Source: Oikopleura dioica
Taxonomy: Eukaryota > Animalia > Chordata
Assembly (NCBI GenBank): GCA_907165135.1
Contig: OU015568.1
Span: 8,680,001-8,744,000, forward strand
DNA: 64,000 nt
Direction of reading: 5' to 3'
Part shown: one piece after another, positions 3,001 to 15,602 of the stretch
Layout of the letters: each line of letters opens with the position of its first letter
Position numbering within the stretch: position 1 is the stretch's first letter
The notes under the pieces: model-generated
Told to the model about the DNA's origin: nothing
The model's input: only the letters and a program-made list of their open reading frames with translations
Database searches by the model: none
Translations under genes and position numbers: made by a program

Positions 3001-6000
3001 CTTTTCAACAGCACTGCACCACCACCAACACGGGATCGCGTTCTCTCTCGAGCCGAGAGTGTTGCTTCATCCCTGCATCTTGGGTAACCGATGCATGAAA
3101 AATTCTGATATTCATGATTTTTATTATTTACTGATTTTAAAATTTCAATGAAATTTTCTAATGAGCCTTTTTCATAATGTAGAAACCGTCTTGGCAAGAC
3201 GGTCTTGCCCACTTTGCTTTTCTGTAAGATTTCATGTTTAACTCTGATTTAGACGGAGAAAAGGCAGAAAAATCTCAGAACAAACTGATCTTCCTGAACA
3301 ATCACCAGCTGAAAAACTAATTGCGCTCCGCTTTTTCAATGCTGCTGAAACGCAACTTGAGCCGAGTGATAAAGTAGAGTGGATATTGAAATACTGGAAT
3401 ATGGTCGAACAAGATGTTATCTCACAAGTAAAACAGACTCAGGAAGATGAGTCGCCGAAGAAAGTGAAATCAAGATTAAAACCGGAAGAAATAAAAGCCG
3501 AGGAAGAAAGAATTGCGGCGGAGATTGAGAACGAATTGAAAAAGGAAGAAGTCGGCGTGATTATGATCGAAATTGAAGCCGAGTGCGAGCCCCCCTCGCT
3601 CGAAAAAATCTACGAACAGCTACCAACTGTTGAAGAAGTAGACGACGACCTAGGTCTTGGAGTAAACGGACCACCAATTCCTGAGCCTATCGAATTCACG
3701 GTCGTTCCAAAGCCGCAAAGACGCCAACCGCCTTATTACGACAAGCCGAAGTTCTTCGATCTAATTGCTTTGAATCAAGACGATCCAAATATCCACTCAG
3801 ATGATCGTATTCAAGAATCACTGACAGAATCAGTAATGACGGAAGCAAGTGACAAACCATCAAGCAGCTCAAAGAAAAATCGAGGTAAGGGAAGAGGCTC
3901 CAGCAATGCGAGCAGAGCAAAAACAGATCGCCCAACTCCATCGCCACTCCCGGAAGCAGAAACGCAGCCAGAAGACAAATTTTATCGACTGCAGGATTAT
4001 CGATGGGTCTTACAGCCAGGCGAAGAAGTGACGCTTAGGGTCAAGTTCGACTGCAACAAAGTCGGAACTATCGATCGAGAACTCTCATTCGAGACAGTTA
4101 GCACACGACAAGTCTTTAAAATAGCAGTCCGTGGAGTTTGCGTATTCCCAGACATTGTCAGAGATATCAAGAAAATCTTCATGCCACCCAAGTCAGTCGA
4201 AAGTTCAGATGGAATTGTCCGACCAGTCGGGACTCTTGTCGAAAAGAAAAAGAAAACAATCGTCAAATTTGAACCGGCGCTCATTGGGAAGATGGAATCG
4301 AAGGAAAAAGATTCTGGCGCTGCTAAGTTCAAAATTGTCAACTCTGGTCCCCTTGAATCTGAAGTTACATTTGCCATGAAAAAAGGAGACTCCGTTTTTA
4401 CACTTGAACCGTTCAACATGAATCTGGCTCCGTTTGAGAAGAAGATTTTGACAATAAATGCTTTCCCGAAATCTTCTGGAACTCACGATGACGCTCTTAT
4501 CGTCTGCGTGTCCGACAACCCTGTTCCTGCGATTTTCCCCGTTCAAGTAACCGGAGTACGCCCAGAAGTTCAAATATCATGGAACGGCGAAGGAAAACCA
4601 ATTAACTTTGGAAAAGTTCTGCTCCATCGTCTATCGAGTCAGATTTTGCATTTGTTCAATCCGACTGATCTCCCAATAAACTGGAGAATAGAAGGCTTGG
4701 ACAACCTGGGCGACGAATTCTCAAGAAATTGCGATTCGGGAACTATCAATCCGAAGGAAACTTTTGATTTCATCCTTGATTTCAGAGCGCTCAAAGCTCA
4801 GAACCACAAGCGAAACATACGCCTTGTCGTGAGCGATACTGACAATATCATCGGCGACTGTCAATCCGAAACGATTCCAGTTTTCGCAGAAGCTTACGAT
4901 GTAGCTATGGACATGAGCTTTCCAAAGGGCTGCGATGGCGGGCTAGAATTCGGCACAATCAAGGTTCATGATGAAATGAAGCAAGTTTGTACGTTGAAAA
5001 ATCGCGGGCGATATGAGATTTCGTTCAAATTTACTCTCGAAGATCATCTTTTCAACAGCGAACTGTCGCGCTTTTTCAAAATCATGCCGCAGCAGGGCTC
5101 TTTATTGCCCAACGATAGGCCGATGCAAGTAAACATCGTTTTCAACCCACCTGAAGAGTTCCACCTGGCTAATCTTCCGATAATCAAATGTCACGTGATA
5201 GAAGCAGTAATCGGCGAAACTATCGCAGCGATTCCGATCAAAGTTTCCGCTCGATCAGTGTTTTCTCAATATGTGATCACGCCTTCCAAAGATGTCAATT
5301 TCGGCCCAGTTCCGTATGGAAATCATAAACGAAGCTTTGAGATTGAAAATCATGGAGAATTCGATTTCAAGTTCGCTATTTCGAAACTGGTTAAACCTGG
5401 CTCTCCACCAAAGTCAGAGCGGCCGAAGAGAACCAAAGATTCGCGCCAGAGCTCCGCTCAGTCGAGAAGACCTGGTCAACTGACTAGAGAGCAGACACAA
5501 GTTATGAAGCTCGCTCATGGGCCTTTTATTATCTCACCTGGCTATGGAAATGTTCCGGTTGGAGGATCAATCGTCATCAATGTTGACTGCAATGTAGAGG
5601 CGTCAAAGAAATTCGAAGAATTCATCGCCATTGAAATCGCAGACAGAGATGTCCGTAAAAGCCCGGCAGGAATCAACTATAAACTGATTGCAGAAGGATG
5701 CCAGCCAGTTATTGACACAAAGAATATCGAAGCGATCTTTGAAGAACACAGAATTCTTCACTCAATCGAAGAAGCAATTCATTTGCCACTCTTTGACTTG
5801 CAATGTGGCATCTATGGCCAGATGGAGAGTCAGTTCAACTTTCCGTTTTCCACAGTCGGCGTTCCGAATTCCGTTCGCTTCAAGATCCTCAACCCTTCGA
5901 AACTACCCTGCGATTTCGTCGCTTCCGTTAAACCACTTATTCCAAAAGACAGACAACGGGTTTCAGACAGCTTCGAATTTGACCCACCACGGGGTCAAAT

Positions 6001-11716: not shown

Positions 11717-12720
11717 TTAAGAATTAACCCACTAACTCCATCGTGATGGAATCTGGCGCCCTGCGCCACGTGCTGAGTGGATCGATCCCTCTTCAAGCCG
11801 CTCCTGCTAACGGTTCAGAAAAAACGCGTCAGATCTAAAAAAAGAAGATCGAAAAAATAAGAAATTTTTAAAAAACCCAACTTTTCAAAAAAGAGGTAAG
11901 AAATGGCATTTGTAAAAAAATCAATTGAAATTCTCTGATTTGTCAGATTTTATTTTGGCACGCGGAAAATAAGACAAAAAAGCGAAAGTTTTTCGAGAAC
12001 AAAGAGAGAATTTTTTAGTAAATGCTGTTGAGGTTCGTAAATTTCTAGATATTCTGGGGACTTCATACATTTCAAATTCAAGGGCGCTAGAATATTTCTT
12101 CAATAGCGAAGGTGTTTTATGTTGAGAGAAAAGATCGACTATAAATCGAGTATTTTCTACAAAAAGTGTTGATTCGAAGATCAATTTATTTTCTCAATTG
12201 ACGATGATGGTCTTCTTATCGACCCTTTTTGTAAGAATTTTACTCTAAAATTTGCGTTTTAGAAAAATTCCAAGCTCGTGACTCGTAGCAAAATCTGTCG
12301 GTAAACTGTCAACCGTTCTAAAAAGTCTTGATTTCGCGCCGAAAGCCTTTCTTTCTATTCGAAAATGACGATTTGGCGGGCTTTCTAGCGACGAAATAAG
12401 GCGCATTTTTGTGGCGCGCGCGCACTTTCTGCTTTTTTTTAATTTCAATTTTTCCTTTTTTTCAAACTCTCTTTTCTCAACTCGAACAATTCTTATCTCA
12501 GAATTCAAATTTGGATCCTAGAGAGCCCAACAGTCTGATCTTCAAAATTTTGAGCCAGAGATATTGATACAATATCCGAGTTACTGTACCTAGGCAAATA
12601 AGAGAGAATGATCAATATTTACTGTATAAACTCAAGTTCGGATTTTTTCCTTTTGAGTTAATTTATTAAAAGCATTGAACTTGCATTTTGTCAGCTGAAA
12701 ATCTAACTGTAAATCTAAAT

Positions 12721-12733
12721 ACTGTCCTTTTAG
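12721..12733 (+). promoter_or_regulatory. Acceptor-like site 16 nt upstream of the kinase ATG (candidate SL trans-splice or 5'UTR acceptor)
   Basis: ACTGTCCTTTTAG immediately before the ATG at 12750. Similar sites precede GET1 (15590-15597) and WDR19 (16289-16295). Confidence 0.45.
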
Positions 12734-12749
12734 AAGCACTTTACGGAGC

Positions 12750-15244
12750 ATGGAACCTCTTATCAAGCGAGCCCGAAAGAACCCTGTTAGAATCAGCATT
12801 GAAGGGAACATTGGTAAGTCACAAATACTTGAAATCCACAGTTTACTGTTCTTGAAATGACCGGCTACAAATCTACAGTCAGCTAAAAAATTAAACTCGG
12901 CGGGCGGGCACTTTTCTTCGCCCTGGGCGAATCACAGACGAGTTTTTTATTGAACAGAACTCGCTGTCCGGATTTTTTCTTTATAGAGAAGCTTTTTATA
13001 CAGTCATTTGATAGACAAAATGATGGACAAAAGAAGGTTTAGATTCTATAGAAGGTAGAAATATATAATGAAAAACGGCCTGGAATCTTCTGGCCGTTGA
13101 CGTAATCGATAATTTAAATCCGGGTTAATTTATTTTTCTTCTTTCGTTGAATAAATTCACCGCTTTCAGCCACTGGAAAATCGACCTTCATCAAGATCCT
13201 CGAAGAAGCGGCTGGAACTGAAGACTGGGAAATCACACCGGAACCAGTCTCCACCTGGACCCAGATCGAGGGCAAAAATGTAAGTTCCCACTCGTAAAAT
13301 TTCGCTCCCGAAAACATCATAAATCGTCCGCGGAAAAAAACCGACGAAAAAATGAGTGTTTAATGAGTAAAAAAGACGTTGTCTAAAATTAGTTGAGTAA
13401 ACTGTTAAAACACTCCCGCTTAAAATTTAAATTTTGTAGCCTGTTGAGCTGGAGGTAAAGTCACTCTTTACTCATTTATATACATTTACATTTATAAATT
13501 TGGTTTCATAAAGAGCCCAAATCCAAACTGTTCTCTTCATGAAGCCTAAACGGACGAAGATTTCGTCTCTCTAAAATGTCAAAAATGATCTAAATTCCGT
13601 CTCCTACTCGCCGAATTTCGCTCTCAACTCCTCCTGCTAAAGAGTTTTACGTTAGCCTTATGGAAAATTTTCAAATGAGGATCATTTGTGACATTTAGAG
13701 AACCGGAATCATGCACTTCGGTCCTTTTCAAACCCTGCATGCTTTTATCATTTTCATTTATCCCCATTTTCAACTCAGAATTTCGACTCCTGGATGCTCG
13801 GGCTGGTTCTCGGACTGATTTTTTTCTGAAATTGAGCTGTTCCCGCGGGCCGGCTCGCCGCATCCGCGACCCCCTAAAATTTCCCCCTTTTGTGTCCTTT
13901 TTTCGTGTTTCAATGAATTGACACCTTCTTTTTTGAAGGGAAGCTCATCGGGCGGCAACTTGCTGAAGCTCTTCTACGACGACGCTAAGCGTTGGTCGTA
14001 CACTTTCCAGAGTTTTGCGTTGCTCTCGCGAATGCGCTTGCAGCGGGAGCCCTTTGGGCCAAGGACCGTCGCTCGTTTGTCTGAACGTTCGATCCATTCC
14101 GACCGGTAAGTAGTTAGATTTAGTACTAACAGGGGTTGAATATCGTACAGAAAACACGCCCGAGCATCCCTAAGAACCATCTCCATTTTGAAAAATTCAT
14201 TTATAAAAATTCGCTGTTGTAATTTCTGAAAGTCGCTGTTGTAGTAATTGACCGGTCCATTTTTAGGAGCAAAACGCGAAAAAAGAGATTTTGGGCAAGT
14301 TCTACACTGACCCTAAGCGTTGGGCCTACACTATGGAGAGCTTCACCTTTGTGACGCGCATGCACGCCGAGAAAATGCGCCGTCAGCGGCCATCCTCGGT
14401 CTCGTGCTCGATAAACGAGCGAAGCGTGTATTCAAATCTGTACGTTTTCAACCCCCTTTCAACCTCCCCTCATTTGACAACTTCTTCCATAGCTACATTT
14501 TTGCACGAAACTGCTTCGAAACCGGACTCATGACGGAGACCGAGTGGGCCATTTACAAAGACTGGTCGACTTATCTCCTCGAATCCCTTGGCGATCTCCA
14601 GCTGGATGGATTCATCTACCTTCGTTGTGATCCCAAAGTTTGCGATAAGCGAATGGCAAAACGAGGTCGGCCAGAAGAACAGGGCGTAACCTTGGAGTAC
14701 CTCACCCAGCTGCACGAAAAACACGAAAAGTGGCTTCACAATCGCGAATTCCAGTAAGTTTTCAACCAAGCCAACCAGAGGCCCAAGACAAGATTGAAAA
14801 TGTCTTTCCCTAATGATTTTTCTGAAGAAGTTTTTGGAAAAACAGCATATTTATCCTATATTTTTAGTAACGAAGAGATTATGCACGATATTCCAGTGTT
14901 GGAAATAGACTGCAATATGGAATTTCATGACGACGAAGCAATCAAGACTAAAATGCTCAATCAGGTTCGTCATTAACCCCTATCAGTGCGAATATCGAAA
15001 ATGAAGAAGTCTGATAATTCAAAAATACTTCCAGGTTCGTGATTTCGTCCGCCAGGTGCAAGAAAAACGTCAGGAGAAGCTCAACTCTCTCCAGGAAACC
15101 GATTCCGGAGTGGACTCGTACTCCCGTTCAGACTCTCCTCTTTCGGACGCGCAGTCGCTCAGCCCGCTTCCATTTTCCAAAACAAGCAGCGAGGAAGAAA
15201 TCGCTCCAGTGGCGCAAGTTACGACTGAAATCAAAACTGAATAG
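12750..15244 (+). CDS. DCK: Deoxynucleoside kinase, dCK/dGK family, with mutually exclusive third exon
   Basis: Spliced translation: MEPLIKRARKNPVRISIEGNI|ATGKSTF...EPVSTW...|exon 3A or 3B|YIFARNCFE...DGFIYLRCDP...RGRPEEQGVTLEYL... It has the P-loop, ERS motif and lid motif. Exons approx. 12750-12813, 13171-13279, 13939-14105 or 14267-14439, 14493-14753, 14868-14964, 15035-15244. DCK versus DGUOK orthology is not resolved. Confidence 0.9.
13939..14105 (+). other. Kinase alternative exon 3A (dCK-like: WSYTFQSFALLSR...ERSIHSDR)
   Basis: AAG acceptor at 13936-13938, GTAAGT donor at 14106; 167 nt, phase 0 to phase 2, open frame. Confidence 0.88.
14267..14439 (+). other. Kinase alternative exon 3B (divergent paralogous exon: WAYTMESFTFVTR...ERSVYSNL)
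   Basis: TTTTAG acceptor ending 14266, GTACGT donor at 14440; 173 nt, phase 0 to phase 2, open frame, homologous to exon 3A. Confidence 0.85.
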
Positions 15245-15602
15245 TTCCCCATTTTCTTTCCAATTTCAAACTTTTAAACAACTCTTTGAACTAATTTGCA
15301 TTTATCCTGTTTAACTACGGGCTTCGTGTTCATCGAAATCGAGCTTCTAGTTACGATAACTGTTACTGTATCTACAACTGTTGCAGAGCTAAAGCTCAAA
15401 ACAAATGTTTTTGTGAACAGATGCGCGGAGAAAACGAACTCCGTTGCGGAGAAGCTTCTGTATAGTTACAAACTGCCTTTTCCTTAGAAATAAATTCATT
15501 CGCTAAATGCGACGAAAAGCAACTGATCATTTTCTTGCAAACATGCCTACAGCATACGACTCTAGAATGCATATTTTACAGGGATCATTTCATTCAGACA
15601 AA

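Follow-up and report, generated by a model that had tools for sequence, protein, structure and literature searches.

Two alternative exons for the base-recognition segment of a deoxynucleoside kinase gene in Oikopleura dioica

In the usual view, the four deoxynucleosides are handled in animals either by several paralogous kinases, as in vertebrates, or by one broad enzyme, as in insects. Mutually exclusive exons that retune metabolic enzymes are known from pyruvate kinase M (exons 9/10) and ketohexokinase (exons 3A/3C), and in insects the exclusive splicing of Dscam exon 6, 14-3-3 zeta, and MRP1 involves competing RNA structures of the docking-site/selector type. Here, we describe a locus of the appendicularian Oikopleura dioica that resembles these systems in part. 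The window analyzed is a stretch of 64,000 nucleotides (assembly GCA_907165135.1, contig OU015568.1, positions 8,680,001 to 8,744,000 of the forward strand), and coordinates given below without a locus name are positions within it. It contains a gene of the dCK/dGK family of deoxynucleoside kinases (dNK) in which the third exon is present in two copies, 3A and 3B. Taking all the evidence together, we consider it probable that this is a single gene with two ancient, mutually exclusive copies of exon 3, which encode differing pockets for the nucleobase and between which a choice is made by competing RNA pairings.

The gene model was obtained by reading positions 11800-15600 and by joining and translating the exons with a script. 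Residue numbers are those of human dCK. The parts of the gene are as follows:

12750-15244, + strand: whole coding region of the dCK/dGK-family deoxynucleoside kinase gene, from start codon to stop codon, with seven exons including both alternatives.
12750-12813, + strand: exon 1, with the start codon and the first part of the P-loop.
13170-13279, + strand: exon 2, with the remaining part of the P-loop (GNIATGKST) and the catalytic Glu region (EPV..W), ending in phase 0.
13939-14105, + strand: exon 3A, 167 nt, with the Q-type pocket (Q97, A100, R104, the ERS motif, D133, and the split codon R134).
14267-14439, + strand: exon 3B, 173 nt, with the E-type pocket (E97, T100, R104, the ERS motif, N133, and the split codon L134).
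14493-14753, + strand: exon 4, common to both forms, from Y135 onward, with the arginine-rich lid KRGRPEE; 87.1 bits to the dNK profile PF01712.
14868-14964, + strand: exon 5, common to both forms, placed by the spliced gene model.
15035-15244, + strand: exon 6, common to both forms, with an acidic Ser-rich tail, which is disordered in the predicted structure, and the stop codon.

Every intron of the kinase gene has GT-AG ends in this model. Exon 3A is bounded by the acceptor ...tttgaag/G and the donor CG/gtaagt, exon 3B by ...tttttag/G and CT/gtacgt (the slash marks the exon boundary), and both exons run from phase 0 to phase 2. Splicing in the order exons 1, 2, 3A, 4, 5, and 6 gives a protein of 302 amino acids (isoform A), and the version with 3B gives 304 amino acids (isoform B). 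Inclusion of 3A and 3B together leads to a TGA at codon 143, while omission of both leads to a TGA at codon 104. The pair thus has the layout of tandem exclusive exons: the copies are adjacent, homologous, and equal in phase, and the frame is broken both when the two are in and when the two are out. An original prediction, made from the letters of the stretch alone, had arrived at the same coordinates, lengths (167 and 173 nt), phases, splice sites, and frame argument, all of which were reproduced by the splicing script.

Either exon alone is recognized as part of a dNK. At a cut-off of 27 bits, the PF01712 profile matched 3A with 40.6 bits and 3B with 34.3 bits, and the two matches cover the same profile positions, 36/39 to 87. 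Precomputed PF01712 matches also exist for proteins P0095, which is isoform B of a second O. dioica lineage, and P0073, an isoform A. The segments encoded by 3A and 3B are 35% identical (E 2e-11). When the PDB was searched, the closest match to 3A was human dGK (5.9e-10; 42.1 bits), followed by dCK; 3B was also closest to dGK but was far more diverged from it (1.3e-3; 22.7 bits). The translation carries GNIATGKST, PEPVSTW, and KRGRPEE in the shared exons and ERS in both 3A and 3B, and the columns of the P-loop, the EPV..W Glu, ERS, and the lid are invariant in family alignments. The exchanged segment encodes helix alpha-4, with the base-contacting residues 97, 100, and 104, together with residue 133 and the ERS motif. 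The residues at dCK positions 97/100/104/133/134 are Q-A-R-D-R in 3A and E-T-R-N-L in 3B, so that the patterns previously assigned to the two exons (Q-A-R-D and E-T-R-N plus R134L) are borne out by alignment. In dCK structures, Gln97 is the main reader of cytosine, forming two hydrogen bonds to N3/N4, and Asp133 binds the amino group (PMC1802566). Isoform A has both of these residues. Isoform B has Glu at 97 and Asn at 133, and was therefore not classed as a dCK- or dGK-type enzyme.

An AlphaFold2 (AF2) model was made for P0095. The model had a predicted local distance difference test value (pLDDT) of 80.7 and a predicted template modeling score (pTM) of 0.76, with the exon-encoded helix at pLDDT 83-95. 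Its best PDB matches were dCK and dGK (TMt 0.86-0.93), which identifies the dNK fold. Given the confident helix and the TM of ~0.9 to dCK/dGK, isoform B should thus be a normal kinase body with an altered base pocket.

Both exons are expressed at substantial levels, one at a time. Transcripts were followed in three oligo-dT RNA sequencing (RNA-seq) runs labeled O. dioica (X10, X11, and X12), with junctions listed when they reached 1% and at least three reads. The reads are 90-95% like the window, and thus come from another O. dioica lineage. The junction of exons 1 and 2 was covered by 62, 109, and 486 reads in X10, X11, and X12, respectively, that of exon 2 with 3A by 75, 112, and 486 reads, and that of exon 2 with 3B by 20, 42, and 204 reads. 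The share of 3B among exon-2 junction reads was 21%, 27%, and 30% in the same order. The junction of 3B with exon 4 was found in all three runs, and that of 3A with exon 4 was found as a truncated junction (14051 to 14492). Neither a 3A-3B junction nor a junction of exon 2 with exon 4 was listed at three or more reads among ~950 exon-2 junction reads. Loose read ends at 14750 run on into the exon 5 sequence of the other lineage. In a seawater metatranscriptome (X6), chosen for holding 93% of sampled 3B words, a contig of 239 nt joins 13249-13279, the whole of 3B (14267-14439), and 14493-14527 with two mismatches in total, and a complete isoform B cDNA contig (L008, 1034 nt) is present in a Logan assembly. 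At the 5′ end, loose read ends near 12738, ~12 nt upstream of the start codon, mark the point where the spliced leader is joined. The string at these read ends matches the tail of the leader described for O. dioica trans-splicing (PMC6883708), and the kinase mRNA is thus trans-spliced.

The annotation of O. dioica proteins contains isoform A only, as P0073, and is without isoform B. P0073 (“unnamed protein product”; deoxyguanosine kinase in UniRef) is the closest named protein and is ~91% identical to isoform A of the window outside exon 3. As annotated in the Bergen genome (L009, FN655428.1), it has five extra residues, PVSLE, at the boundary of exon 2 and 3A, which are unsupported by junction reads.

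The constraint acting on the exons was evaluated from fixed codon differences between the window and the RNA-seq lineage. Ten synonymous changes and a single replacement (S43V, in a variable loop) were counted in 3B, and six synonymous changes and one replacement in 3A; the E-T-R-N-L signature is kept in P0095. The pattern of codon changes thus indicates that exon 3B is under purifying selection. On two counts that the original prediction had left to be checked, the outcome was in its favor: 3B is used in RNA, as seen from the 20/42/204 junction reads and from the X6 contig, with exactly one exon per transcript in the junctions listed, and it is constrained.

The arrangement is shared with ascidians, a fact that the earlier reading had overlooked. 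Searches of 1.84 billion representatives with 3B alone, and the follow-ups to them, yielded isoform pairs with an identity of 98% or more outside the exon and of 29-58% within it. Such pairs were found in Styela clava, in the second O. dioica lineage (P0095/P0073), and, in metatranscriptomes, in four appendicularian taxa. In Phallusia mammillata, there is a Q-type protein and a 135-residue E-type fragment with identical flanks, as seen by alignment only, the fragment being too short for the pair comparison. At the Styela locus (L001), a Q exon (3849-4045, 197 nt) lies upstream of an E exon (4355-4542, 188 nt); each starts in phase 0, ends in phase 2, and splits the codon of residue 134. On a Tara metagenome contig from another appendicularian, the order is exon 2, 3A, 3B, and exon 4, as in the window, and each of its exon 3 copies is matched at 100% identity by one of the two transcripts of that species. 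A region-restricted word search with the Styela E exon as a query returned only five proteins, with no taxonomic spread.

A second copy of exon 3 was searched for and not found at the amphioxus locus (Branchiostoma floridae, L002), which has a single Q-type exon 3. In the intron that follows the exon-4 equivalent (~5287-5436) of this locus, two further partial tandem copies of the WNIYCDWH...LRAEPEV segment were noticed (region 5287-5887), one of them open (5469-5591) and the other containing stops (5585-5887). In Ciona intestinalis, the Q-type kinase gene (L003 2001-2939) is intronless and encodes 312 amino acids in a single exon, and C. savignyi has a separate E-type protein, P0041, which is ~60% identical to the C. 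intestinalis Q-type protein outside the exon. Judging from these proteins and from the intronless C. intestinalis locus, each of the two forms may have come to have a gene of its own in Ciona, with the Q isoform represented by a retrocopy.

Dating of the duplication by an exon tree was tried and given up. With the signature columns included, the tree had a single E/Q split (support 79/96). After removal of columns 97/100/133/134, the E label takes three changes, and an all-E clade costs 18 log-likelihood units (p-AU 0.06, approximately unbiased test); in a reduced set, a clade of appendicularian E and Q exons, equivalent to an independent duplication, had a p-AU of 0.52. The ~58 columns are too few to decide between a single tunicate-wide origin and parallel origins.

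To place the 3B pocket, residues at the signature positions were compared in 222 fetched proteins. Sequences with Q97 have D at 133, rarely E, and N in two cases; sequences with E97 always have T100 and R104, and S, G, A, or N at 133. The E-type members comprise the alternative exons of tunicates, stand-alone ascidian-like proteins including P0041, a group of eukaryotes, and bacteria. The bacterial members belong to Candidatus Dependentiae/Babeliales (loci L010-L089), where 76 of the 81 homologues are E97-(A/T)100-R104-G133 and where no Q-type gene lies within 1.5 kb of the E-type genes. No E-type protein was found among solved structures in the PDB search with 3B, and neither the ESM Atlas nor NCBIfam holds a name for the eukaryote group or for the bacterial E-type. 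By its sequence, exon 3B belongs to a discrete, uncharacterized E-type pocket class, unlike the human dGK pattern. The change R134L, which had been listed earlier together with the other differences of 3B, is present in the exon but is specific to O. dioica: almost all relatives, other E-type sequences included, have K or R at this position, and L134 is not a feature of the class.

Members of the E-type eukaryote group (P0011, P0012, P0014, and P0156-P0166, from JGI, Logan, and ENA) have the signature E-T-R-S-R-L, an N terminus with a long Ser/Pro-rich extension, and an acidic insert within the loop of exon 3; a Q-type partner was not seen for them.

The introns flanking the alternative exons contain sequence elements with the potential to pair in two ways. 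The elements are as follows (dG values are for the pairings named):

13790-13824, + strand: element U of intron 2, able to pair with element C through a 12-bp perfect core GGATGCUCGGGC (dG -32.2); the pairing would loop out 3A.
13842-13869, + strand: GC-rich island in intron 2, with 27/28 positions identical between O. dioica lineages, in a surrounding intron that is poorly conserved.
14131-14170, + strand: element C, in the intron between 3A and 3B; its 5′ part (14131-14152) is predicted to pair with element D and its 3′ core (14158-14169) with element U.
14436-14456, + strand: element D, over the 3B 5′ splice site (CT/GTACG), complementary to the 5′ part of C (dG -27.6).

These elements stand out in a comparison with the Bergen genome (FN655428.1). 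Positions 13790-13818 of U (29 nt) are 100% identical there, in an intron that is otherwise indel-rich. The paired blocks of C, GGGGTTGAA, ATCGTACAG, and GCCCGAGCATCC, are likewise identical, and indels are found in the linkers between them. Element D has two substitutions in the Bergen lineage, and its pairing is kept by means of G-U wobbles. The CTCGGG core of U recurs at the corresponding position in another species (L005). A complementarity search revealed no pairing partner for the island at 13842-13869.

Whole-intron duplexfold statistics proved too noisy, with long interleaved duplexes, and were replaced by ungapped-helix and fixed-window tests. In a pre-set test, a 33-nt segment centered on the 3B donor was paired with the central intron, and the result was compared with 500 shuffles of the intron that preserved its mononucleotide composition. 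The z-score was -6.8 (0/500) for the window, -5.4 (0/500) for L005, -5.3 (1/500) for the Bergen genome (L009), and -3.4 (2/500) for locus L007. No comparable signal was present at the 3A donor in the window and in L007, the two loci where it was looked for. The sequence of L007 is different, but the architecture is the same: one C element there can form either a 29-bp duplex with U (-47.9) or a duplex with the region of the 3B donor (-34.5). In Styela, each of the two exons has, at its 3′ coding end, a segment to which one and the same intronic element (L001 4230-4267) is complementary (-43.7 and -41.7), and the helices score 56-58 versus a shuffle maximum of 40. In both L007 and Styela, the two alternative pairings use the same nucleotides of the C element. 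The Q and E exons of Styela (L001 4005-4036 and 4501-4528), which are otherwise well diverged, have the first 11 nt of the bound segment in common (AACCCAGTGCA); such identity is expected if RNA pairing constrains the coding sequence.

By the shuffle tests the complementarity exceeds chance, and by the comparison of lineages and species the pairing is conserved. A mechanism can be proposed in which pairing of C with D would hide the 3B donor, so that 3A is used, while pairing of U with C would loop out 3A and free the 3B donor, so that 3B is used; transcripts with both exons or with neither would be frame-shifted and lost. Conserved elements able to pair in two ways, across 3A or with the 3B donor, suggest that the intron pairings around the exons form an RNA switch controlling the choice.

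As to the outcome of the choice, it is plausible, by analogy with related enzymes, that isoforms A and B differ in nucleobase preference. Isoform A would accept dC, dA, and dG in the manner of dCK. A carboxylate at position 97 accepts hydrogen bonds but cannot donate them, and isoform B would favor bases with an N-H donor facing this residue; because R104 is kept, dG/dI would be the most likely of these, with dT/dU possible. Feedback inhibition by the matching deoxynucleoside triphosphate (dNTP) would then differ between A and B as well. In the fly enzyme DmdNK, the Q81E variant takes a base with a proton donor at N3, and the triple substitution V84S+M88R+A110D, at positions equivalent to 100/104/133, confers a dGK-like preference (PMC11357392). 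According to the titles of PDB entries 3hp1 and 3qeo, R104M/D133A variants of dCK bind thymidine analogues. A difference in substrate gains support from the Q81E data (PMC11357392) and from the covariation of positions 97 and 133 across the family. The view of the original prediction that 3B replaces vertebrate DGUOK is not supported in that form: the pocket of human dGK is Q...D like that of 3A, and 3A is the exon closest to dGK. Its central statement, that a single gene of the dNK family has a mutually exclusive pair of exons carrying the base-recognition residues, is supported, as are the expression of both exons and the constraint on 3B.

A more far-reaching interpretation can be offered tentatively, as one that in our estimate falls a little short of an even chance. 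The E-type would be a natural, previously unrecognized specificity class with reversed hydrogen-bond polarity, such as a kinase devoted to dG/dI or to dT/dU. Beside the Q-type, tunicates would have retained it over hundreds of millions of years as a module selectable by splicing, with a conserved RNA switch making the choice, and Ciona would apparently have split the two into separate genes, one being an intronless copy of the Q isoform.

The strongest competing explanation, which we nevertheless regard as unlikely, is that both isoforms take the same nucleosides and that the swap alters quaternary structure or regulation (homo- versus heterodimers, stability, or strength of feedback). The swapped exon corresponds to the long helix 74-97 of the model, which presumably lies in the dimer interface of dCK, dGK, and dNK crystals, and many residues outside the pocket differ between 3A and 3B too. 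However, the differences that are fixed between E- and Q-type sequences, from bacteria to tunicates, are exactly those at the base-contacting positions 97, 100, and 133, and changes at equivalent positions shift specificity in fly dNK (PMC11357392) and, by the titles of entries 3hp1 and 3qeo, in human dCK. That isoform B has little or no catalytic activity, and works instead as a regulatory partner that binds nucleosides or nucleotides, appears to us very improbable. E97 and L134 are unusual when compared with characterized enzymes, and the dNK fold has, according to PMC9226000, been reused in NDUFA10 as a non-catalytic dGTP-binding subunit; but 3B keeps the ERS motif, all other catalytic elements are common with isoform A, and an E-type protein is the dNK homologue in ~76 Dependentiae genomes (counted over fetched loci rather than whole genomes), where a dead enzyme is unlikely. 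The idea that 3B is a decaying duplicate and its use mere splicing noise, to which its greater divergence (22.7 vs. 42.1 bits to human dGK) and its absence from the O. dioica annotation might lend some color, can be dismissed in view of its 21-30% share of exon-2 junction reads, the 10 synonymous changes versus 1 replacement, the full-length B transcripts of several species, and the conservation of 3B in ascidians.

Several points nonetheless weigh against an ancient exclusive exon pair with differing pockets and an RNA-based choice. Dinucleotide composition was not preserved in the intron shuffles. In the window, the strong cores of the U:C and C:D pairings are adjacent, and only weaker extensions overlap, at 14137-14152; the two pairings overlap only partly in L005 as well, and it is in L007 alone that they are shown to be strictly exclusive. 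The RNA analyzed was bulk RNA, without resolution of stage or tissue, and nonsense-mediated decay could hide rare double-inclusion or otherwise aberrant transcripts. L134 of the O. dioica exon 3B, kept in both lineages, could weaken the enzyme. The direction in which the specificity of isoform B would be shifted is derived from a chemical argument only. Finally, helix alpha-4, which we take to lie in the dimer interface of the family, could transmit an effect of the swap on dimerization.

If the proposed exon pair with two pockets is correct, it constitutes a third solution for animals, one gene with two exchangeable base-recognition modules. An E-type pocket is common to tunicates, a eukaryote group, and Dependentiae, and the isoforms, which differ in only ~57 residues, form a clean natural experiment on how a drug-activating enzyme family reads the base. 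The intron pairings, if real, would provide a compact chordate model of exclusive splicing controlled by RNA structure, and O. dioica, with its small introns and compact genome, is suited for such work.

The literature that we searched (subscription journals being outside its coverage) contains no paper that describes mutually exclusive exons for any deoxynucleoside kinase, nor one on the tunicate enzyme, in line with the earlier statement that the arrangement was not known to have been described; that statement needs to be amended insofar as the S. clava pair exists as an automatic NCBI isoform annotation (“deoxycytidine kinase 2-like” isoforms X1, of the Q-type, and X2, of the E-type). Mutually exclusive exons, competing RNA structures, and the kinase family itself are all known already, and it is their combination in a deoxynucleoside kinase that would be new. 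With human dCK and dGK, the Oikopleura kinase shares the fold (TM ~0.9), the P-loop, the EPV..W Glu, ERS, and the lid, and isoform A shares Q97-A100-R104-D133 with them too, while no solved enzyme has a pocket like that of isoform B, with E97 and without an acid at 133. Where vertebrates have the separate genes DCK, DGUOK, and TK2, Oikopleura has one gene and obtains two pockets by splicing. The positions engineered in the Drosophila dNK (81/84/88/110) are those that differ between 3A and 3B, and Q81E is chemically the same change as Q97E. In insects, however, there is one broad dNK and the E variant is man-made, whereas the E variant of Oikopleura is natural, ancient, and paired with the loss of the acid at 133. 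Dependentiae homologues (TM6/Babeliales) share E97-(A/T)100-R104, with G at 133, but are encoded by stand-alone genes.

As mutually exclusive exons, 3A and 3B resemble those of pyruvate kinase M and ketohexokinase, which are also tandem exons of equal phase, of which exactly one is used and by which the handling of a ligand or effector is changed, with the remainder of the enzyme in common, though the enzyme families are different. The candidate switch, as read from the sequence, is like the docking-site/selector systems of insects in that alternative intronic pairings would each favor one exon and in that pairing is kept while sequence changes (L007 compared with the window). It differs from them in the pairing partner, which would be the 5′ splice site of the downstream exon in appendicularians and the 3′ coding ends of both exons in Styela.

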